This document shows positions 1,352-41,400 of a DNA stretch of 64,000 bases, one piece after another. The stretch comes from Takakia lepidozioides (taxonomy: Eukaryota; Plantae; Bryophyta), in the NCBI GenBank assembly GCA_030704615.1, contig CM060733.1, forward strand, positions 17,732,001 through 17,796,000. Direction: 5' to 3'. A program made the position numbers and the translations under genes. How positions within the stretch are numbered: position 1 is the stretch's first letter; every line of letters begins with the position of its first letter. A model generated the notes under the pieces. That model saw only the letters and a list, made by a program, of their open reading frames with translations, ran no database searches and was not told the origin of the DNA.

Positions 1352-2600
1352 TTGGCAATCCCTTCCACTGGGACAGGTTTCTTCCAGGCCCACAGGGCTT
1401 TGGCGCGAAGTCGCAGCCCCCCGGCTATGCGGGCAGCCCCGATCCGGGTTCCCTTGGTTGCTCCTCCCTCTCCCCGGCTGAGTCAGTCGCCAATTTCGGA
1501 TCCCACCACGCATGGGTGCCCACCCCAGCATACCGGGGTTCCCTCTCCACCTCCCCATACAGTCGACCCCCAGCAGGATGCAGTCGACCCTCAGCAGGAT
1601 CTATTGGAGGATATTTCGGATCTCCAGAGATCGATGAGTAAATCTTACCCTCTTGTGGAGCTAAATATGTCCACAATCCACGACAGTGTCGCAAACTTTT
1701 CGGAGAAAGGGGTGCTTATTCACTTCCCTGGTAGAAAAGTTGACAGAGATCATGCAAGGGATTGGGCCATCTGTCACTTGGGGGGGTCTGGCGACCTTAA
1801 TCATCATTTCTGCCACTCCAGGGGCCAAGGATTTTTCTCGGTTCTTTTGGATTCAAAAGAAGCTGCAGATAGGGCACTTTAATCCCCACCTGGCTGGTTT
1901 TAATGTTAACATTTTTCCTTGGTCGAGTGCTATGGGCAACAAAAATGGAAAGGTGTGGAGTCCCAGGATCATTGCCTCGCCATATATCCCGGACCAGTAT
2001 CTCTTCAGTTTGCTTGAGATAGGGAACTTCTTGGGGGAGTATTTGGGATGTTTGGCGGTGTTCAACCCCCACAACTGTCCAGTAGCCCTTAAGAATAATC
2101 TTGCTTGGAGGGGGGCCTCGAGTTCATCTAAGGCACATGAGAATGGGTTTCCAAAGATTGTTATAATGATGCCTGATGATGCAATCATCCCTGAATTTAT
2201 TCGTCTCCCCATTGACAAAGGCAACTTCTTCTCGGTCAAATTATATGAGGACACTACCTCTACAGTCTGCTACTACTGTGGACGTATGGGGCACCTCAAA
2301 GCTGTTTGCCCGAAGGCCCAAAAGAAAAGAATTGGGTCCCCATTGGGGGCAGAACAGCAACCTGCCGCCCCCCCTAAAAGGCACTTCTACGATCCGAAGG
2401 GGAAGTCCCTTGTCTTCTCCCAGGACACGCACAATGCAAAGAGGGCGGCATCGAATGCAGGCGAAGGAGACCTGCCAGATTGGGTTCCTCAGGCCACTAG
2501 TCATGCTCAACCACCGAATCTCAACAGGTGGTCAGCCTCGCTGTTGCGCGGCTTCTACTCACCCATCCCTTCGCTATCCGAGGCGGAAACTCCAAGATAG
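1352..2600 (+). mobile_element. L1-type LINE ORF1 (zinc knuckle), frameshifted
   Basis: Overlapping ORFs 1352-1882 and 1686-2600; Pro-rich N-terminus, DUF4283-like region (GQGFFSVLLDSKEAADRAL) and CCHC knuckle CYYCGRMGHLKAVC. Confidence 0.8.
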
Positions 2601-2660
2601 AAGAGTTGGAAATCTCAGCCCGCTCAGAACAATCAGTCATGACCTACAACTAGTGTATCA

Positions 2661-2850
2661 TGGGGGTGTTTCCTATTTGTTTTCCTTCCTGCATTCATGT
2701 TAGCTAGTTACCTTACTGCTGGTAATTAAGTATCAGTTTTCTCCATCAACTCATCCATTCATTCCACAGCTTCACTCAGATCCCTCTACACAGTGTGAGT
2801 ATGAAGTGTGTATCAGATTAATATCTATCAAGTATCAGGCTAAAGTCCTG
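2661..2850 (+). mobile_element. Possible short LTR remnant (G-run, TG...CA, degenerate tRNA-Met PBS)
   Basis: GGGGG-TGTT at ~2662-2670 and ...TATCA at ~2829 followed by AGTATCAGGC, which resembles a deleted TGGTATCAGAGC. No second LTR is visible. Confidence 0.25.
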
Positions 2851-3309
2851 GAGTCTCTAATCTGCTCTACAGTATAATTCTACTGCTTGCTATCATTAAG
2901 CATCAACAGATCCTCCTCCTACTCCGTGCTCTCCATCTTTCTGCTCAGAGATACACTCTCTCCTCCTTTCCCCCAGTGATGTCCGAAGTCTCCCCCAAGA
3001 AGTGCCCCCCTCTCGTCTCCGCTGCCCGCTTTATCCCTTCCCCCTGTTCTAACCGTTGTCCTTCACAAACCGGTCCTCCGTGAATTACATGTTCCCCGGC
3101 AGATGTTGTTCCCCACAGTCGTTCCCTGTCATGATAACCGTTCCCTACGACTGTGTCAGACTGTGACGGCTGTTTCGGGCTGTGACGGGCTGTGTATGGC
3201 TGTGACGGGCTGTCTTAAAAAATTCAAACAAATTTCGCCTGGTCCCTGCGTATTTCATAATCATTTCGATCTTTCTACGAACATACCCACAAAGTTCTCA
3301 AAGCACAAA

Positions 3310-3490
3310 ATAATTTCGATTGATCTCATATTATAATAGGACGTATCAGAGGGTACATTGAACACACTGGCCAAGTTTCAAAGCGAACGAAAATCATTTG
3401 GATGTGCAACCATCCGTTGGCCCATTGAACGAATTTCGATTGAACTCATATTACTCTGGGGCCTCTTACATGGCACATTGAATATATTTC
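3310..3490. repeat. ~120-bp tandem repeat, first block (~1.5 units)
   Basis: Unit ...ttgaacacactggccaagtttcaaagcgaacgaaaatcatttggat...catccgttg.cccattgaacgaatttcgattga.ctcatatta..., same as at 4080-4495. Confidence 0.85.
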
Positions 3491-4079
3491 GCGTGCTCAT
3501 GATTTTTTTTTTCATTGCGTTTTTGAATGGGGCGTGTAATGTACCTATATGCAACGTGCATGTCAAATTTGGGAGCGATCAAAATTCATTTGGACCCAAA
3601 ACGACAGTTTCTTCCCTATTTTGCACTTCAAACTTGATTTGTGTTCTACTTCATGCACTTTTTTTAGAGAGTTCTGCAATAGTGAGCGAAGAGAACACTT
3701 TTTTTTGGGGGCATTTTTGATTGGTCCAAATTTCGGCAGGGGAGTAGCCGTGGGATGCTGGAAGCCGCAGAACAAAATTGAGCCAAAAACAAAATAAATA
3801 CGTGCCAGAAACCCCCACTGAAAGGCAGTGCAAACCTATTTATTGGCTTAAAATAAATTTAAATTCAATTAAATTGTGGAATGGCTTGAGGGGGGAGTGC
3901 GTCGATGGGGAGGCAAATGATTTATTCGTCTATTGTATCTTCACACATGTTCAAGCACATGCGGGCAAAAGAGGGGCTTCAACCACATCCGTTCAATGGG
4001 TGCAATAGCCGTGCACGCATTGCAGGATTTCTTTTTCGCATTGAACAAAAACCAGATGACAAATGAACGTCTCATTGGA

Positions 4080-4495
4080 CAATCGAATGATTTTCGATTG
4101 ATCTCGTATTACACTGGGACGTATCAGATGGTACATTGAACACACTGGCCAAGTTCAAAGCGAACGAAAATCATTTGGATGGGCAACCATCCGTTGACCC
4201 ATTGAACAAATTTCGATTGATCTCATATTACTCTGGGGCCTTTTACATGGCACATTGAACATAGTGGCCAAGTCTCAAAACGAACCAAAATCATTTCGAT
4301 GGCCAACCATCCGTTGAGCCATCGAATGAATTTCGATTGATCTTATATTAGTCCAGGACCTGATACATGGTATGTTGAACATCGTGGGAAAGTTTGAAAG
4401 CAAATGAAAATCATTTGGATGGGCAACCATTCAATCGCCCATTGAATGAATGGGGTTTCGTCTTCGATTATACTGGGACCTGTTACATGGTATGC
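4080..4495. repeat. ~120-bp tandem repeat, second block (~3.5 units)
   Basis: ttcgattgatct.atatta recurs at ~4093, ~4212 and ~4332, with a degenerate copy at ~4463. Confidence 0.9.
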
Positions 4496-4498
4496 CAT

Positions 4499-4783
4499 TT
4501 GAAGCTCTTTTTGTAGTGTCTCCTGCCTCGTAATGCGGTGCTTTTGATGTTCACTTTATCCAGTATGTTAATATTCTCCACCTGGAACAGATCCACATAT
4601 GTGTGCATAAATCCTTAAAAAACCAAATGACCATCTCAACTTTTATAAGCCTCATGGTCATTTGTTTTTGTAAGTTATATACGCATGTGTGGATATGTTC
4701 CAGATGGAAGATATTAACATTGGAAAAATAAGAGTTGGAGAAGCACCTCATTACGAAGCAAGAGACATTACAGAAGACCTCAA
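4499..4783. ncRNA. Long imperfect fold-back HP1 (candidate hairpin/miRNA-type precursor)
   Basis: Arm 4499-4634 pairs with 4654-4783, e.g. tgtctcctgcctcgtaatgcggtgctt vs revcomp tgtctcttgcttcgtaatgaggtgctt; ~19-nt loop. The inverted repeat is seen directly; RNA function is inferred. Confidence 0.55.
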
Positions 4784-4904
4784 TATTGAACATCTGGATG
4801 AAGAATTTTGCCCATCGTCGCTTCAAAGTTCTAGCGCTTCTGAAATGATCACATGTTTTTGGTGGAAGCAGATATCGTTGGCCACATTGATCTCGTACCC
4901 ATCG

Positions 4905-5020
4905 AAGACTCCCGTAGGCCACATGGAACGGTTCATGTGATATATTTTCACAAATGCGATGTGATACATTTATGAAATGATATCACATCAACCGTTTAAT
5001 GTGACCAATGCACGTCTTCT
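4905..5020. ncRNA. Imperfect fold-back HP2
   Basis: gaagac...ggccacatggaacggttcatgtgatatattttcacaaatg aligns without gaps to revcomp gaagac...ggtcacattaaacggttgatgtgatatcatttcataaatg (~53-nt arms). Confidence 0.5.
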
Positions 5021-5076
5021 GCACCATGGCGGAAATGTTCGCCACTTGAAAGCATAAACACAAATAATCCGTGCAA

Positions 5077-5452
5077 ACAAATGTCAAGAATCATATGTAC
5101 TGCAAGGTGTTTCATATTGCCGATGTTCATGTAGCAGAATTATTTAGGAATCGTTTTGCTACTCCCATGCCAACAACATCAGGTCCACTGCGACTGCCAT
5201 ATTCCGAATTCCGTATTAGCCACCACGGACATGAAACCAGGAACTTCGCACAAAATCTCCAATTTATTCAATTTATAGTGGGCCATGGCTGTAGCCTGCA
5301 AGCTGGCCGGGGTGGCTGATACGTCCGTTTGAACATGACAGTCTCAGAGGACGTTGGCATGGGAATAGCAAAAAGAGTACTACAGAATTCAGCTAGAGGA
5401 ACAACAATAGCATGAAACACCTTACCGTAAATATGATTGTTGACATAGGTTG
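5077..5452. ncRNA. Long imperfect fold-back HP3
   Basis: Arm ~5077-5232 pairs with ~5303-5452, almost ungapped. It explains the look-alike ORFs 5071-5319(+) and 5268-5468(-). Confidence 0.55.
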
Positions 5453-5520
5453 TAACAGCTCCAATCAATAGAGAACTCGCACCATCAGTTGCGCTCCAAT
5501 AGCAGTACCGGTCCCCCGAG

Positions 5521-6053
5521 TAAATAAAATTCCGTTGTAGATAATAAATTGCATACGCTCGAACCTCACAAATGTCATTTCAACAAAACCGGCCGTGTAT
5601 TGTGGCACTGTTTGTAACTGCGAATGTTTCAATGTTTCTGACAGGGTACTGAGAAAATGATATATTGGATCCATATGAGTTAGACAACAAACGTTCTATA
5701 TCTCATTCAACTGTGCGATACTACCATGAGTGGCATGGATAAAAAAGTGATAGGTGTACATGCGACCTCCGCACGTTTAAGTAGAGACCTAGTATCAAAC
5801 ATTCGGAGGTCGCATGTGCACCTATTACTTTCCGATCCATGCCTCTCATGGTAGTGTCGCACAGTTGAATGAGATGAGACGTTTGTTGTCTAACTCCTAC
5901 GGAACTAATACATCGTTTTCTCATAATCCTATCCGAAACCTTGGAACATTACAAATATAAACAGTGAGCCAGTACACAAACCATTTATGTTGTGATGACA
6001 GGTGCCAGGGTCGAGCATATGCAATGTAGTATTTACAATGAGATTTTATTTAT
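5521..6053. ncRNA. Very long fold-back HP4 (~255-nt arms)
   Basis: Arm 5521-~5775 pairs with ~5800-6053. The inner ~95 bp (gagttagacaacaaacgt...catgcgacctccg) is near-perfect; the outer part is mismatched but nearly ungapped. Confidence 0.6.
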
Positions 6054-6135
6054 TACATGCACGATCAAAATTGAGTTACGTCTTCTTTAAAGAACCATTG
6101 TACTGCCAGAAATGTCATATCTACGAGACTATGGT

Positions 6136-7613
6136 CTACTCCGTCCTATATACGTTTTTTGGCTCAGACCAATTGAATGGCTTGCCCATGAACCGAAGTA
6201 CTACATGGGCTAATGTGACTATCTCATTCTTGTTGTTGTCGTACAACCTTTGTAGCATTGAATGCCAACAACCTCCCGTAAATTGGTCCTGGAACATACT
6301 TTGATCATAATGAACGCCGTCATTTATTCGTACCGCTATCTTCCCAACGGCGAAGGCCTCCGACGTCATGTCCTGGGGGGGGGGGGGGGGGGGGGGGGGG
6401 GCGTGACATTCGCATTGAAAACCGATGCAATATCTTTTTTCACCCACCATCTTTTCGCGAATTCCCGGTCCAGCTTGTCTTGGTTTTCAAACTGGTACGG
6501 CGAGGCTTTGCGTATGCCCAATGAGATGGCTAAGCCCCAATCACACACCCCAATCTTGATCTCCTCGGTATCATATGGAAAATGCAACAAGATGTTGTCG
6601 GGGGACAAGTCGTTGTGCATGACACCGTTTTTGTGGACAACATCCATGATGCACACAAGTGGCCATGCAAGTTTACTGCGCATTTTCCGGAAACGAAGCA
6701 AGCGATCGCATTCCTGGAACTCTGTTTCTGTTCCCCTTTGTTCCAAAATCACCCTGTTGTCCGAATTGTTGCCTCATTTTCTGTCAAGGTTCATCATGTC
6801 GCGTATTGTCCCCCCATTCCACCTGCGAGTGTAACCCTCTACCTCACGTGCATTCACAGCAAAATACGAGATAACACCCGGATGCTGGAACTTCACTGCC
6901 AAACACTTGTCGTTATGTTGTCTTAACGTCTTTTCTGGATTTTTGGACTTGGGTTTTTTTCCCGCTAGCTCCTAACGCTCCGGTATTCTAGAATCACCAA
7001 CAATCCTACAGTGACGGACCTTAGCATACCCTTATTCTTTGTAATGGCCAATCTCTACCACCTTCGCAGTAGAGTTCAGGTAATAAAGACCAGTTGTGCC
7101 TCCCCCGCCCGATGACCCTGCCTTCCAAGGGACAACCCTAGTCCGGCGATGTGAATTCTGACTTGCCGAACAAGCCCAATACTCAACACGCCGCATTACC
7201 TCAGCTTCGGCGGAGGGCACTCGACCCTCGGTTGTTCTACCCTTCCATGTCTTCATTAGCTACCTCAAATTCCACGTGACGTCTTTTGCCATGCTTTGGA
7301 TCCTCCGATTGAACTTCGGCTTGTCCCTGTCCGCCGTCCATTTAGCCCCCGCCAAAGCGTTTGTCATTTTCCTCTCCATATTTTGCTGAAAAATCTGAAA
7401 CCCCTCCCATCCATGCCTAATATAAGCACTCTCCAACCTCATCATGTCCCTACCCTTGAAATAATCTGCTACCACTTCTTTCACCTTATCCAAGGCATCC
7501 GATCACGTGTAGTTTGGCTTGTTGACCTGGCTATCCCGCTCGTGGGCACGTTTTCTCTTCCTCCACCCCCCAGACGATCCCGCCCCAGAACTGGAATTCA
7601 CAACCCTCGACAT
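6136..7613 (-). pseudogene. Divergent intronless protein kinase (~490 codons) with 5 in-frame stops and a homopolymer frameshift
   Basis: One frame from ATG 7613 through ORFs 7260-7493, 7032-7256 and 6366-6752. Motifs: GYAKV, ELAGKK, HPGVI, WNGGT, HNDLSPDNILL, VCDWGLA; SEAFAVG lies after the G27 run in ORF 6136-6450. Stops at 7503, 7260, 7032, 6972 and 6774. Confidence 0.85.
6375..6401. repeat. G27 homopolymer (poly-Pro on the kinase strand)
   Basis: 27 consecutive G at the frame switch of the kinase. Confidence 0.95.
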
Positions 7614-8237
7614 TATATAAACCTTTGCACACTACAGGGTCCAAAACCTCAGAAAAATGGCAATGAACGCATGTGGATGGTATCTTCGTAGTTTTCTGCA
7701 AAAAAACAAGCCGCCGGAGATCCGGAAACAGCAAAATGGTGATACGATGATTGTACCGTGAACAAGTGTGTGGGACTGCCCAATAGAAACTGACAAAACC
7801 TCCCCCCCCAAATAATCACATTTGCACCTCCTGTTGGCAGTGCCAAGCAACGAAGTCCGAAAGGACTACATGATGCCAAGGAACCGCACCACAAGAGGGG
7901 CAAAAGTGATCAGAAAAGGAGGGGGGAATGGTTTATATAGGCGCCCACCAGCCCCCCCCCCTCCCAAAAAAATGGCATTATGCTTGAAAGGCGCGACAGG
8001 CCAGTGACGCCTCACCACGTGTCAGCGCGGCGCGACTGGCCAGTCGCACCTCGCCACGCGCACCCACATGGGAGAGGTCAAGGGTTCAAAACCACCTCCC
8101 CCCATCCCACTTGTTTTGTTTTTCCTGACCTGTGGCACCTCGCCACGTGGCTGGCCGAGGCGCCGCTTCAGGATTAAAAATAAAAAAACAAAACGCCGCA
8201 CGGCGGGTCCTTGGATTTCTAAGGAAAACAAAAACTT

Positions 8238-8610
8238 GCGACCGCTGCATGGCGGTCGCTATATTTATAAAAACAAGAAGAGCGACTGCCACATGGCCAA
8301 TGTAGGCGGTCGCTTATTTTAAAATGTAATAAAATACAAACGACTGCCAATATGGGCGGTCGCTTCATTTAAAAATAAATAAATTACGGGCGACCGCCAA
8401 TTTGGGTGGTCGCTTCATTTAAAAATAAATTAATTACGGGCGACCGCCAATTTCGGCGGTCGCTTCATTTAAAAATAAATAAATTACGGGCGACCGCCAA
8501 TACTGGCGGTTGCTTAATTTAACAAAATATTAAATTACAAGCGACCGCTAATATGGGCTGTCACTTTTATTAAAAATAATAAATTATATGCGACCGCCAA
8601 TATAGGGGGA
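8238..8610. repeat. Array of ~8 palindromic units GCGACCGCC-N4-7-GGCGGTCGC with AT-rich spacers, ~50-bp period
   Basis: Units start at ~8238, 8282, 8341, 8390, 8440, 8490, 8541 and 8590; the last copies are degenerate. Confidence 0.9.
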
Positions 8611-8828
8611 CTCATTTTTTAAGAAGAATTAATAAATATTAATAATTGGCCACGTCTGTTTTACACCATGGCTGCCATGTCATTACAAAGGGTAGAAGTA
8701 AATCGTAAAAGTCAAATGTAAAAAAAATAAAAACATGGGTAAACGTCCGGATTCGACGTTTTGTGACGCACGTCGGCCGTCAGACGGCCGACGTGTCAGC
8801 GCCACGTCACGTCAAGAATGATAACTAG

Positions 8829-11800
8829 GCTTTCGGGAACAACAACAGGAAAAGATGCGTATGCAAACATGGGTCAATTGGTCTGCCAAAGGCGAGAAAA
8901 TGTCTAAGTATTTCTTTCAGAAAACCAAGCTTAGAAGGGCCATGCAAACCATTCCTGAATTATATGTTGACAGTAAAGGCAACAAATCTTCCAAACCAAA
9001 GGAGCTCTGTGGGCTGGCTTTCAAGCACTTCAGCTCCCTGTTCCAAGCAGATCCGGTGGGGGTGGACATCGCCCAGTTGCTTCAAGCATACCTGCATTCT
9101 ACCCCATGTCAATACAGGGAAGGGGATGACCAACCCTTGTCCAAAGATTTCACCCCTATGGAGCTGGAGGATGCTCTGGACCAAATGAGCAAGTGTAAAA
9201 CTCCCGGTCTTGACGGTATGCCAATGGAGTTTTACAAGGCCCTCTGGCCTCGCATCGCTCAAGAATTCCGTGACATGGCAAATGAAATCCACAGGAAAGA
9301 TGCTATGCCAGGTTCCATGTCTCAAGGGGTCATTATTCTCCTTTTAAAAAAAGGGGATAGAGCAAACATTAATAATTATAGGCCCATATCGTTGCTTAAC
9401 GTGGCCTATAAAATTATTGCCAAGGCCCTGGCTCTCAGGCTCCAGCCCCTACTCCCTTCGTTGATTAGAACAGGTCAAGCCAGGTTTGTTAAAGGGAGGT
9501 ATATCTTGGATAATGTCCTTCTGGCCCAGGAGGCGGATACATATGCCAAGGCATCAAATCAAGCGCCAACACTCTGGCTGCTTGACTTTGAGAAGGCATT
9601 CGACAAAGTGGGTTGGGATTTTCTTCTGGCAGTTCTGCAAAAATGTGGGCTGCCACCCTCGTTCTGCAAGTGGGTTAACATCCTTATCCGCAACAGCTCC
9701 AACAGGGTTACTATTAATGGTCATTTGTCAAAACCCTTTGCCCTCCAGAGATCGGTGCGACAGGGATGCCCTCTCTCGCCTTTCCTCTTTCTGTTTGTGG
9801 CAGACTCTTTGGATTACATGTTGGAGGTTAACCCTGTCGTGAGGGGCCTTCAAATGCATGGCTTCGGAGCTGATGTTGCCCTTCAGATCAAAGATTCTAT
9901 GTTTGTTGATGACACCTTTCTCCTGCTTCAAGCTGAGCCAGCAGCTCTGTAAGCAGCCCAATGCACGATTGACACCTTCTGCAAGGTTTTGGGTTTCAGG
10001 GTGAATTGGTCGAACACCAAGGCTCTTCTGGTGGGTGATATTTCTAAGTCTGGTCTGGGGGTCTCCCCCGTATGGGGGGCTAACTTGGGTTTGACCTGGC
10101 TCAAGGACGGGGAGTCCACCACCCTCTTGGGCCACGTCTTCGGGATTAATCTCTCTGAAGACCAACGTTTGGGGCCCACTATAGCCAGGCTGAAGGGGCA
10201 ACTAACATTCTGGGGCTCTAGGTTCCTCTCCATTACTGGGAGGGCTCTGGTGGCTAACCAGACCCTTTTGGCCGGTATTTGGTATTTCGCCTCAACCTGG
10301 AGCCCCAGCTCTAAGCATATCCACGAAATCAAAAAGTGTATTAGGAACTTTATATGGGGGGCCCATTCGTTGGACTCTAACAAACGCCCCTAGGTTTCTT
10401 GGATTCAAATCATAATGCCCAAGAAAATGGGTGGCCTCAGTGTCTTGGATCCTGAAACCCAGATCAAAGCCCTATTGGGAAAATGGCTCCCCAGATTCCT
10501 GAGTCCAGAAAGAGGTTGGTAGAAACTTATGGTGATAGGTTCTATTTCCCTCAGTTCACCCCTGAGTTCCACTCAATGGTCTCCATCTCTAAGATGGATC
10601 ACTCAAGGTTATCGTCATAAATCCCCTGGCTCTTCCCTTTGGACCTCTATTTGGTTGGCCTGGGGGAAGTGCCGACCTTTCCTGCGAAAAAAAGAGCCTG
10701 CTTCCTTTTGTGAGGTGCTCAGGTAACACCTTTTCCTTACCAAGCCAGTCCCATCAACTGTGGAGAGGAGCCAAGCCACAAGATGGGCAGGGTGGGATGT
10801 AAGGGGACTCTCACAGGTCTCCCATCTATGGTTTAGTACCCCTGTATCTCTTTCTAGAACTCTTGGCACCCAAAGACTCTCCGCCGGCATTGCCTCATTT
10901 CTGCAATCAGTTCCAGACTCCTGGAGAGACATGCTCAGACAGGGTCCTTCTTCTCCATCTCTTTATCAGTGGGTGACCACACCTGATCATCATTTTCTGG
11001 TCATGTTCATAACGGAAGCCTCGCGTGTTAACCTGGTGGGTTTCACATTCAGAGCCCATCCGTATACGGGTGCTCTCTCGCTACACTCATCCGACTCCAT
11101 CTCAATCCCATACAACAACACCTCACCAGCCAGAATCTGCCACTGGAATTCCAAGCTCAAAGATTTTAATCCCAACACATAGGTTCTACCATGGTTATGA
11201 TCAGGAAGTTTCATTTGGTTTGGAGGCCAGGCCATCCATGATCTGCAAATCGACCCGACAGAATGGCATTGGGAATTCGGGGACAAGATTTGCTCCTTCT
11301 TCAATTACACGGCCAAGGGTGCCTACAGAGCGATGCTGAAGGCCAAGCCTCTAACCAAAAAATGGGACGACAGATGGGGCTTATTCCAATTTAGAGAGGA
11401 AAACTGGAAGTGCATTTGGGCTCTGATTTGGGAAAAATCAAAACTGTTTTCTATGATGTTACTATTGCAGCTAAGTTGGCCTGGCAAAAACTATGTGCAG
11501 AAGACAGGAAACCAGAACGAAAAGATTCCCTCTTCGCCTCCTTCAGAGCATCTTGGGGAAGAGGAAGAATCATTTGTTGCATCATTGATACGGACTCCTG
11601 TACATGGGCAGACTCCATACCTGAACTCTGGAAATACCGATGGGGCACCGTCTCAAAAACTTCAAATATTTCAAATATACTATTTATATTAACGAATTTA
11701 TTTAACGAATAATAATGAATAATAGGCCTCCCCTGATCTGGACTCGAGAGATATTAACTGGAAGCACATAAAGAGGGGATCTAAATCTAAGTTGATCTTC

Positions 11801-12178
11801 CTCAGATAGACATCTTCAGAGTTTCGCTCCTTGGCTGTTTCTGGCCTGTGCTCTTACTGTTCGTCGTTCCGTTCGGTTCCATCTAAACTAGGGCACCTCT
11901 CTCATGGACTTTTTCACTCCTATGAACTAATCCCAGATTAGCTCTCTGCGCTATGGCAAATCTTGCAACCAATAATAGATGGGTCTACCAGGGCTGCATG
12001 CGTAATTAGGTCTATTTTCTACCCTATTCACTGATCGTTGGAATCTCCAACACGGTCCCGTGTGTTAAGCCTCATGGCAATTGTAAGGGTTTAATTTTTT
12101 CCCTTTATTAATAGATTTTCAGGGCCTCTCATCCCTTTATTAAATAAATAAACAATAAAAATAAAATAAAATAAAAAA
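8829..12178 (+). mobile_element. L1-type LINE ORF2 (reverse transcriptase), 3' UTR and A-rich tail; degenerate
   Basis: KTPGLDGMP, NYRPISLLN, LDFEKAFDKV, RQGCPLSP, MFVDDT, then GRALVAN...RNFIWG; several stops. Tail AATAAATAAACAATAAAAATAAAATAAAATAAAAAA at ~12143-12178. The endonuclease domain is absent. Confidence 0.92.
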
Positions 12179-17043: not shown

Positions 17044-17965
17044 ATGGATAGCTCACAATATGCCGTATGGAGTACCGAGGGGATTTCAGACATGCAAGAG
17101 AGGATCGCGTCTACTGCGGGATCTCTCGCATTTCAGCCATTTTGCCCTGTTGTTGCACAAAGATCAAATCTGCCCCCTTTGAATCCAAGCATTGATGATG
17201 ACGTTGGTCTGATTAGTGACCCTGGAGTTGGCAATGCAAGAGGAAGGCAGCTTGCCCTGAGCCTATAGGTGTAGACCCCTAAGATGAGGATGTGCAGATT
17301 ATTCCAGAAGTAGCAGCGTCGAAGAGACAATCTGCACGCAAGAAAGCTGCACCCAAGACAACCAAATCCAAGAAGGCTTTGAAGAAAGAGGACTCCGAGG
17401 AAGATGCAGATTCTACCGGTTCAAAAGCCTGGAAAGATTTAGATACAGAGGCACTGATTGCACTTCGAGGTGAAATGGAACCCGAGTTTATGAAGAATGC
17501 CAAGAAACAAGGTATTTGTTTTTTTTTGCTTCTCAGCTGCCTTGTTTGACATGCATGCTTACATATTCAGTTGAAGTTGTGACAGCCTTGTGGGAAAGAG
17601 ATGCAGGCTAACCACTGAGGAGACTCTGTTCCATTCATGTCTATTTTTGTGCCTATCAATGCTAGTTTAGAAGCTTTCTATTATCTAACTTCGAAGCTTT
17701 CTATTGCTTCAGAAGTTGATGTATGGTTGAAGCTACATGCCAGAATGGTTGCAGCAATTCCAGGGTTCACAAAAACAGTCGAAGCATGTAAGAAAAAATT
17801 CAACATCTTGTTTAAACAGTACAAAATTGACAAAATGACAAACGGAATATCTGGAGAGGGTAGGCATGAATGCAAGTTCTATGACTCCATTGATCAGTGG
17901 TGGCATCAAGCAGAAACAGTCATGAAGCATGTCACAACATCTGCAAATGAATCATCTGACCAGCC
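17044..17965 (+). pseudogene. Harbinger Myb/SANT-like DNA-binding protein, 2 exons, disrupted and 3'-truncated
   Basis: W...DTEALIALRGEM, intron 17512-17712, then VDVWLKLHARM...KTVEACKKKFNILFKQYK...CKFYDSIDQWW. Frameshift and stop near 17265. Confidence 0.8.
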
Positions 17966-17981
17966 AGGGCCTCGTTGGATC

Positions 17982-18697
17982 CCGAAGTCGAAATCCCATA
18001 ATTTACATTTGGAGTCCACTATCCCTTGCAGTAGAGCTGAATAGAATCCTTTGCGGCAGTAGTAGGAGATTGGATCAACTTTAGGAGCAATAATTGGTAT
18101 ATGGCTACCGTCCACAGCTCCAATTATATATGGGATCCCCTGCAATGCTTCAAACTCGGCTGCTATTCTCTTTATGCTTTGACCAGTAGGTTTCTCAAAC
18201 ACTATGTGCTTCAAATGTTTTCTGACAGATGCACAAAAATCTCTGACAATGATAGATGCAATATTTTCTGCCACTCCATAAATCTCTCCACACATTTGTA
18301 ATGTGTTGCCACTGCCTAATCTAGATAATGCTATGGCTACCCGTGTCTCTAAGGGAATGTAAGCTCGCATGTGAGAATGTGTCTTGGTCATAGATGGAGC
18401 AACAATGGAACACAAATATGTGAAAGTACTTGGATTCAACCTGGTTCGCTGCTTGAACATCTTATCTGAATAACTGCCCATGAGTTGCCGCTCCATGAAA
18501 CCTACACCTCTCTCATACATCCACACAGTTCGATCTCTTGGCCCATTCCCTTCAATAATCATGGCAGCCATCATCATCATTGCAGCCTGGTGATGACCAA
18601 TGGCAAGTTGTTGTGCAACTACAACGACAGTCATCACATGACGGACTGCCATGAAGAACACAAGTGCCACCAAAGTCTTGTGCCTATGAGCATCCAT
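17982..18697 (-). pseudogene. Harbinger (HARBI1-like) DDE transposase, 3'-truncated
   Basis: FKQRTRLNPSTFTYL, IPLETRVAIALSRLGSG, GAVDGSHIPI, YYCRKGFYS.LLQGIVD; ends before the GSxHD motif. Confidence 0.92.
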
Positions 18698-38444: not shown

Positions 38445-41400
38445 ATGGGTGGTGAGCAGGTGCGAGTGCAGGGGTCTCAGCAGTTTCGTCAGCGCCTGTT
38501 GCTTGCCACCTTGGCTGGCACTACCTTGCGGATCGATGACATCCGCGCAAGAGATACGGTGCCAGGCCTGCGGGACTACGAGGCCTCTTTCCTTCGTCTT
38601 CTTGAAAAGATTAGCAATGGATGCACTGTTGAAATCAACGAAACAGGTATTTCTGAAACCGGACGTGCTCCGGAAACTTTCAATCGTGCAGGACCTATGT
38701 TGTGCATGACACCTCACAGCCAATGCTTGTTAGGACCAGTTAAATACTAGGGTTTAGTAAACGAAGAAGTATATATGGATCAAGCAGCGGCGGCTACAGT
38801 GTTGGAATAGCGTCCGTTTTTGCCTGCCAAAAATTCTTGGACATCCTCCCCTCACCTGTTGAATCCTGTCTCATTTTTCAAGGAAATTATCGTGGCAGAT
38901 CTGATGATACTTACTACCTCGGCATTATGGGCGAATGTTGTTGAAAAACTTGCAGGCACAAAATTGAGGTACAAGCCTGGGATTCTCGTTGGGGGTCGAG
39001 GCCTTGTCCACGAGTGTGGAAGTGGCCGCTCAATTGGCTATTTCTTGGAACCCCTTATTGTGCTGGGTCTATTTGGGAAAACCCCTCTTTCTATCTCCCT
39101 GAGAGGTAAGGATTCATTCTCATTGAATCCTGACAGTTTATGCTGAAGAGTGTACATCTGTGCTGTTGGCTGGTTCCGTCAATTGGCTATTTCTCAGAAT
39201 GCAGTATTGTGCTTATTCCAGTGGGGCCCGAACTAAGTCTAGATGTCTGCACAGTGGTGTATGCTGAAGAGCCTAGGTCTTCTTGTTGGCTGCTTGACTG
39301 GCAGACATGACTGTGTATATGATTCTCTTGAATGTCAAAGTTCAGACAATCCAGGAATAAGAGAGCAAGTTGAGCAGGCTGAAACAGCTTGGACAGAATA
39401 TTGATTGCAGATGCAGGAGTGTAATGAAGATTCTGAATTGCTTAGAGATTTCATGAAAGCATTAAGTACTTGAAATTACTGATGTCCCAGGGTTCAAATT
39501 GGGGTTGGAAAATGGCAGGCATAACAAATGACAGCAAGGATCCATGTGTGGACACAGTCCGGACAACTACCCTGCCAATGCTGAAGCAGTTCGGTGTGCC
39601 CATTGAGGACTTAGAGCTGAAGATTGTGACACGTGGAGCTCCCCCTCTTGGTGGTGGGGAAGTGCGACTGAAGGTTCCTATTGTGCATACAAGCCTCTCT
39701 GTGAGTTGTACCCCACCACTCTTCTCCCCAATCCCTCTCCCCTGTTTGTGTCTTCAAACTCTTAGCTCAATTGTTTCCTCTGTTGTTACAACGATTTGGC
39801 AATAGGCAATGTGTGAGAAGGAGATGTGCTTTTCTTAGACTGTTTGCTGACAGACTTCAACAGGCAGAGTCCTCCTTGGGATGTTTACCTCCTGGAATTG
39901 TATGAAGGCTGGAAATTGCCAAAGTGCTGTGGACGGCTAACAATAATCTTGTTCCCAGTGTAGGTTGATATGTAGTGAAGGGCTGGCATTGATTCAAACA
40001 CTCAGTTTTTTTAGCACCGCTGTGTAGTCTCTGTTTGACACACATGTTGTTTGCGCAGGCGGTGACATGGGTGGATGAGGGCATGGTGAAGCGTGTGAGG
40101 GGGGTTGCTTATTCAACACGTGTCTCACCACAACTGGCAAATCGAATGGTTGATGCTGCCCGCGGGGTGCTTAACCGGCTTTTGCCTGATGTTTACATCT
40201 TCACTGATCATTACTCTGGCCAAGAGTCTGGGAAGTGAGTTCCTATTTTCTTTAATATCAGTCAGTTCTCTGAGATTAGGGTAGAGAGATGACATGGGGG
40301 AAAGTACTTGGGTTTAACAGGCCCAAGAATAAGGAATGAGGAACTGACTCCATGTGAGAGCAGCACGTGTCGTATAGCTGTCTCACTAAGAGGGACTGAG
40401 AGAGACAGAATGAATGTGTTTTTGCGAGTATGTATGACTAAAGCTTTATGTAACAGGTCCCCTGGATATGGACTCTCGTTGGTTGCTGAGACTACAAGCG
40501 GGTGCCTTATAAGTGCAGAAGGGGCAGCTGCACATTCAAAAGACGAAGAGCCAGAGATTTCAGAGAAAGATGGCCTAGCCTTGCCAGAGGATATTGGAGC
40601 ACATGTGGCCATGGCTTTACTTGAAGAGATCAAGCAGGGTGGTGTGGTGGATGCTACACATCAGGTGTGTTAAAGTGAAATGAACTTTCTTACCTTCTTC
40701 TAAAACTCTGGTGTGTCCTCTGTGTGGACCTCTCCATCTGTGGTAGTTCTATGGTTTTTCTCAAACTGGTTTCTACTACTCTGTTCCTTGGGCCCTCTGG
40801 CCTCCACCGACATAAGGAAGTTCTTTCTTTCTTCCTCTCTGTTTTTATACCTTGTGACAAAGTGAATTACAAACAGAAAGCTAGTCTGGATGACCAGTGA
40901 GCATTAGGAGCCCCCCTCTCTCGTGTGTGTCCTTTTTCTTCTTCTTCAACATGCAATTGGTGGTCAAGCACAACCATATTTGTCACCTCTGTTTTCAGCT
41001 AGAGGGCTAGGGCAGAAGTGCTTATGATCAACCATGTGCTTTCGAGTATGATATCTTTTCTCTGCATACATGCACGCTCACTCCTGGTACTGGATAGGCT
41101 TTGGCTGTGCACAAGTGCTATTGCAAGTTTGAGTCCAACTTACAGTAATGGGCTGAACTGGACAAGCTCTGGTAAGGGTGATATCCTGCAGATGAGATTC
41201 TCGAGTACCTGAATATTAGCCCAGAAGAATTGACCCGGATAGATGAAGCTGACTTGGAGACTGAAGTGTCTAAAGCCATGTCAGATGCTCGAGGACTGGC
41301 CAATGAAAATGAAGTTAGGAATGAAACTTCCCTGAACTTGTTGCCAGTCTGTGACGTGGGTGAGGACCTTAGGATGGCCTGAAGGGCCTACCAACACTAG

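Follow-up and report, generated by a model that had tools for sequence, protein, structure and literature searches.

What brought a protein-kinase gene next to four long fold-backs (the hairpins HP1 to HP4) in the genome of the bryophyte Takakia lepidozioides, and do they belong to a single mobile element? We analysed this locus, at about positions 3100 to 8828 of a window of 64,000 nucleotides (assembly GCA_030704615.1, contig CM060733.1, positions 17,732,001 to 17,796,000 of the forward strand), and give all coordinates within this window unless another locus is named (Table 1). An earlier interpretation from the letters alone, hereafter the sequence-only reading, had taken the locus for a non-autonomous, Helitron-like element that co-expresses a kinase and small RNAs. 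We conclude with good confidence that it is the dead, transposase-less end fragment of a large multi-gene transposon of the hAT superfamily, from a non-seed-plant lineage that includes the complete element L011. The fuller reading, in which live copies of this kinase-carrying hAT make small RNAs from the hairpins that adjust silencing, we regard as likely.

The assignment to hAT starts from the relatives of the kinase, which were found by searching with the largest stop-free piece of the window frame. They are intact proteins of about 500 aa, 24–34% identical to this frame in full-length alignments; viral contigs gave none. A quick tree, which omitted loci with a kinase piece shorter than 250 aa and in which an X was placed at each break, puts the window kinase on a long branch within a clade of nine rows that includes L011 and a second relative, L052 (support of 99 in the Shimodaira–Hasegawa-like approximate likelihood ratio test, SH-aLRT). 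L011 is 15,757 bp long, is bounded by CAGGGTT terminal repeats, and carries a kinase, orphan genes, a 1039-aa RING-H2 protein, and a DUF659/hAT-dimer transposase. At another relative, L007, the kinase is convergent with a hAT transposase, and hAT sequence lies within 10 kb of the kinase in 9 of the 20 nonredundant loci that have at least 10 kb of DNA. Among the other genes of these elements, orphan genes and the RING protein have a common unannotated N-terminal domain (L011:4701-5732, L011:8281-11400, L008:4138-5631, and L052:692-1777), whose motif, W...K.YV...H..K.WP; VW[AS]E[IV]VL.[KR].VDW, recurs across them. L008 also has a 94-nt Stowaway-like miniature inverted-repeat transposable element (MITE) with TA-flanked CTCCCTC ends, downstream of its kinase relative (L008:3313-3406).

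The right part of the locus has motifs in common with L011. Its end holds six GACGT motifs in 130 nt, against 0.11 expected, and the ends of L011 hold 9 and 11. The 50-bp palindrome array that had been seen in the sequence is present at 8296-8603; its GCGACCG core gives 12 matches (0.5 expected), and the arrays of L011 hold 11 and 22. The 5' leader motif aligns between the window and L011 with a score of 59, the shuffle maximum being 40. The TATA box was also correctly called (TATATAAA at 7939-7932(-)). At the degenerate right end, GTTATCA matches positions 5-11 of the L011 terminal inverted repeats (GTTGTCA/GTTACCA), and the first 4 nt differ. The earlier claim that the locus lacks a transposase or Rep/helicase agrees with our search, which gave no relevant Pfam match among the stop-free pieces of 2560-6130; positions 7700-8830, which the Pfam scan did not cover, hold no open reading frame (ORF) of at least 100 aa.

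The comparison with Helitrons had been drawn from this right end. Helitrons have a 3' CTRR before a host T, a hairpin about 10-12 nt upstream of it, and a 5' TC. A 27-nt palindrome (8769-8795) and a CTAG (8825-8828) do exist here, and an 8-nt direct repeat, ATGATAAC, occurs at 3131 and 8818 as the sole 8-mer common to both junction zones, all of which would suit a non-autonomous Helitron, or a Replitron, with a hairpin and CTAG end that captured the kinase and the hairpins. However, the CTAG is followed by a G, not a T, and lies 29 nt from the palindrome. It is in frame with ORF2 of a long interspersed nuclear element (LINE), which resumes at about 8826, and shares letters with the first codons of this LINE and with the degenerate terminal repeat. 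The palindrome belongs to a set of hAT-type subterminal GACGT palindromes. At the other side there is no defined 5' end, the left end at about 3100 being a repeat mosaic with neither a defined terminus nor a target duplication. The right copy of ATGATAAC overlaps the terminal-repeat remnant. The left copy is not a conserved terminal repeat because other copies differ at three of the eight letters of 3131-3138 (most contig depth carries other letters at 3131, 3134, and 3137). The relatives of the kinase adjoin hAT transposases, and Pfam detected no Helitron family or Rep-helicase among 43 ORFs of at least 135 aa in their flanks, although decayed genes could escape such a search. In sum, the locus resembles Helitrons and Replitrons in its palindrome near one end, its CTAG, and its carriage of cargo, but it has no AT target (the Helitron site being AT/TT), no conserved terminal direct repeat, and no Rep relative near the examined kinase loci (PMC10288648). 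The end structure and the hAT-linked relatives largely refute this reading, and we give it almost no weight.

The kinase, which the sequence-only reading had listed as an intronless kinase, is a pseudogene. Its minus-strand frame (7613-6136) does end close to HP4, with its stop 83 nt away, as had been noted; it is interrupted by five in-frame stops (at 7503, 7260, 7032, 6972, and 6774) and by one frameshift, in a run of 27 G (6375-6401). One family contig has about 19 letters fewer in this run, the difference being either a local expansion or a homopolymer error of the assembly. The stop at 6774-6776 is not typical of the family because most contig depth carries another base there. The window copy also has a Lys at the alphaC position of an otherwise invariant Glu. 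Its intact relatives have the invariant Lys and Glu, the HND catalytic loop, and the DWG triplet; they show the Gly loop, the Lys-Glu pair, the catalytic loop, and the Mg-binding Asp of protein kinases, features that are broken in the window copy. The predicted structure of one relative (P0009) matches protein-kinase domains with no particular subfamily indicated, and the family is thus predicted to adopt a eukaryotic protein kinase-like fold. The ratio of nonsynonymous to synonymous substitution rates among the relatives lies at about 0.13-0.24 for most pairs that could be measured and at 0.40 for one, two pairs being saturated. In the relatives, then, the kinase genes are under purifying selection, and they are intact.

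Are the hairpins carried with the kinase? We aligned to 2881-8880 the contigs of three DNA runs, two of them from one sample that is possibly the source of the assembly, and summed the contig depth, a quantity not equal to copy number. From HP1 to the right end (4481-8880) this depth stays of one order, with values of 15-80 in the independent run X5. The depth of the 120-bp arm (3281-4480) exceeds that of the hairpin–kinase part by a factor of some 30-60, and this arm is therefore common to a very abundant repeat of the genome. Both junctions of the cassette are crossed by diverged contigs: one, at 4397-4593 and 89% alike, bridges the 120-bp array to HP1, and two others, at 5876-6154 (97%) and 5786-6154 (88%), bridge HP4 to the stop of the kinase. 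These data also bear on the possibility that the parts are unrelated nested insertions, with four MITE-like fold-backs lodged between the 120-bp repeat and the kinase pseudogene at this locus only. The left part of the locus (2881-4480), a mosaic of repeats that differ widely in abundance, would fit such a history. MITEs are expected to show their own target duplications and independent amplification, but the best repeats flanking the hairpins are of 4-5 nt, a chance level, and the depth of the hairpins is of the order of that of the kinase, with no excess over it. We reject this reading as highly improbable, since the bridging contigs contradict it. These contigs, the even depth, and the lack of flanking duplications together imply that the hairpin cassette and the kinase move together in this genome. 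The hairpins are therefore family cargo and not nested MITEs. Hence, of the pairing of kinase and hairpins that had been proposed, a mobile, transposase-less unit stands, its two parts being joined in other copies of this genome; the pairing is not obligatory, as L011, L007, and L008 have no long fold-backs.

The four fold-backs and the 120-bp repeats that had been reported are all present. The fold-backs are mutually unrelated and their arms are 68-78% alike. Their folding is far stronger than that of dinucleotide shuffles (z of -15.7 for HP1, -26.2 for HP4, and -12.7 for the region of HP2 and HP3), and despite an arm divergence of 22-32% the stems pair along their full length, with many 21-nt windows in which at least 19 of 21 positions are paired. 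No Rfam family reached its gathering score for them, and the codon-position bias between arms is not significant (19/10/21 in the best frame of HP4). The six-frame stop-free pieces gave no Pfam match. A homolog search with two pieces of the HP4 arms, limited by their length and by its use of exact words, gave no candidate, and the DNA pattern of the HP4 inner stem was not found in metagenomes. Matches of hairpin pieces in the PDB were discarded as chance (for example, RRP45 with E=0.05, a match that extended across two hairpins plus a spacer), and an Atlas lead to Lyase_1 for one piece, at 0.92, was dropped for lack of Pfam support.

Long high-complexity fold-backs lie beside the kinase in 2 of 47 nonredundant relatives, many of which are on short contigs. 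The first, L013 (JGI contig Ga0116229_10065116), has at 2020-2844 a block consisting of a GC-rich motif array, an intron-like stretch, and a 405-nt hairpin, which begins 650 nt after an intact kinase relative. We place it in the lineage from the kinase tree and the promoter layout. Both arms of this hairpin encode SRA/YDG sequence (Pfam SAD_SRA, E=1.2e-8, above the curated cut-off, and 2.9e-4), and their best match among solved structures is SUVH5, followed by SUVH9 and SUVH6. In a transcript driven by the array, one arm would be antisense; this arm has an open frame of 124 codons, and the sense arm is frameshifted, which is what one would expect if pairing with an mRNA is kept. By analogy, this suggests an anti-silencing hairpin like that of rice miR820, although the donor of the SRA sequence could be a transposon-borne gene instead of a host gene. 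The second, L052, has a nested fold-back of 1.9 kb (2051-3950) between an orphan gene and the kinase. Its outer arms, of about 660 nt and 76% alike, read as long protein-like pieces with no assigned family, and our searches did not identify its source.

These observations suggest how a live copy may have worked. The hAT transposase would bind the arrays of GACGT and GCGACCG motifs and move the unit, and the array and TATA box would act as a promoter that drives the kinase. The hairpin block, 83 nt past the stop of the kinase, would be transcribed and diced into small RNAs. Their likeliest job would be the tuning of the silencing of the element, through either host silencing genes or the family's own genes. 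We consider a small-RNA role of the window hairpins slightly more likely than not. The SUVH-derived hairpin of L013 points towards small RNAs that hit host silencing genes. More speculatively, kinase-carrying hATs might be a counter-defence platform that, in addition to its kinase and a RING ligase, has repeatedly captured fragments of host silencing genes as long hairpin-RNA genes, the four window hairpins being a multiplexed RNA interference cassette against several host genes, an extension that we consider doubtful. The small RNAs might instead keep the activity of the element low, the hairpins being derived from the family's own RING or transposase genes. This self-regulatory role appears doubtful as well: profiles of the transposase, the RING N-terminus, and the kinase from other genomes matched nothing in the hairpins (best domain E about 0.13), a weak test given how distant these profiles are.

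Several results weigh against a kinase-carrying hAT with small-RNA-producing hairpins. As regards the hAT identity, neither an intact pair of terminal repeats nor an 8-bp target duplication could be established in the window, and membership therefore rests on lineage and motifs. L011 has CAGGGTT at both ends, whereas the window has a degenerate right end only and no left end was found; the flanks of L011 also lack a matching 8-bp target duplication, possibly because of a collapsed assembly. Identity between the window kinase and its nearest relatives reaches only about 34%, and the 3.5-kb contig of L013 has no transposase in view. As regards the hairpins, most relatives of the kinase have no long hairpin. 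No source or target gene of HP1 to HP4 was found by Pfam, PDB, Atlas, homolog, and profile searches, to which short plant pieces are poorly suited. G-U pairs and A-C mismatches are balanced in the stems (33 to 39, p=0.56), and there is therefore no sign of selection for one RNA strand in this decayed copy. Finally, in a run that we guess to be RNA, HP3 and HP4 are covered by partial pieces and the kinase by almost nothing; these pieces show neither expression nor silence. RNA-like contigs of run X7 align to 5417-5498 and 5666-5785 with about 80-83% identity and diverge from the window beyond these stretches. The lack of strand bias and of an identifiable source gene, like the absence of fold-backs from L011, L007, and L008, would fit another reading of the same hAT fragment, in which the fold-backs are functionless inverted duplications, fixed early and copied passively, that at most trigger silencing of the element by the host. 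HP1 also breaks a 120-bp unit as an insertion would. Yet four unrelated stems still pair end to end despite their divergence, and two further kinase lineages likewise contain unrelated long fold-backs, in one case with a separate array and SRA content. We find functionless fold-backs rather unlikely, and retain the reading of a dead hAT fragment whose live relatives would produce small RNAs.

Elements of the hAT superfamily are normally thought to carry a transposase alone. The relatives resemble other hATs (Ac/Tam3 type; DUF659 and Dimer_Tnp_hAT) in their transposase domains, short CAGGG-type terminal repeats, subterminal clusters, and transposase-less derivatives. They differ in that they reach about 16 kb and carry a kinase, a RING-H2 protein, and orphan genes, each preceded by a motif array and a TATA box, and in that some kinase-carrying lineages bear long hairpins. 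A nonexhaustive literature search gave no account of a hAT element whose cargo includes a kinase, a RING protein, or hairpins. The closest parallel for the hairpins is rice miR820, which lies in CACTA transposons and targets OsDRM2 (PMC3459959). In both cases a DNA transposon has a hairpin whose small RNA pairs, or in L013 with its SUVH-SRA hairpin may pair, with the mRNA of a host silencing gene. Here, however, the superfamily is hAT, the fold-backs are long (0.1-1.9 kb) and imperfect instead of a single microRNA precursor (pre-miRNA), the presumed L013 target is a family of histone H3 lysine 9 (H3K9) methyltransferases, and for the window hairpins our searches found no silencing-gene match. 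VANDAL elements of Arabidopsis, Mutator-like transposons with VANC anti-silencing proteins (PMC6719617), also combine accessory proteins with arrays of a short family-specific motif, but ours are hAT elements whose accessory proteins are a kinase and a RING protein. Only three anti-silencing mechanisms encoded by transposons are listed in a review of 2019, and all three come from flowering plants (PMC6719617). If our reading is true, a hAT lineage of non-seed plants in which the kinase is under selection, and which also keeps a RING protein and gene-derived hairpin RNAs, would be a further arms-race system, and the L013 hairpin names a testable class of targets, the SUVH H3K9 methyltransferases. 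The window locus itself is only a dead fragment; what this analysis adds is the evidence from reads that the cassette belongs to the cargo of the family, together with the hairpin of SUVH origin in L013.

Table 1. Features of the locus and its flanks, in window coordinates.
Feature	Positions	Strand	Remarks
LINE ORF1, zinc knuckle	1352-2600	+	Flank, outside the element
Short-motif array, 10/20-bp units, CTGTGACGG core	3115-3213		Start of very high-copy left arm, longer in other copies; summed depth climbs between 3072 and 3131; loose ends behind 3147 and 3213
120-bp unit, 1.5 copies	3312-3490		93% identity to 4092-4263
120-bp unit, 3.4 tandem copies	4082-4500		HP1 interrupts the last unit
Fold-back HP1, about 290 nt	4499-4785
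Fold-back HP2, 116 nt	4904-5019		Pre-miRNA size
Fold-back HP3, 376 nt	5076-5451
Fold-back HP4, 532 nt	5521-6052
Protein-kinase pseudogene, intronless	6136-7613	-	Family of about 500 aa; HND catalytic loop, DWG replacing DFG; 5 stops, 1 frameshift
5' leader motif	7787-7823	-	Common to the kinase gene of L011; 39 nt, 90% identity
TATA box, then TCACTT start-like motif	7902-7939	-	Same arrangement in L011, L052, L013
50-bp palindrome array, GCGACCG/CGGTCGC core	8240-8632		Resembles arrays preceding L011 genes
hAT-like subterminal GACGT cluster and degenerate terminal repeat	8735-8828		Takes in palindrome 8769-8795
Decayed LINE ORF2, linker and reverse transcriptase	8826-11950 (end approximate)	+	Flank

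The locus lies between the remains of LINE ORF1 and ORF2, and no LINE endonuclease domain was found between the two. To the left of ORF1, a 59-nt stretch (1218-1276) with CAGTG...CACTG bounds contains motifs like those of the 3115-3213 array and has no target duplication. Further along the window, a decayed PIF/Harbinger-like pair (17637-18697) consists of a Myb/SANT protein and a weak DDE_Tnp_4 match, and an intron-containing host gene at 38445-40673 encodes a protein like RNA 3'-terminal phosphate cyclase, of the RCL1 type.

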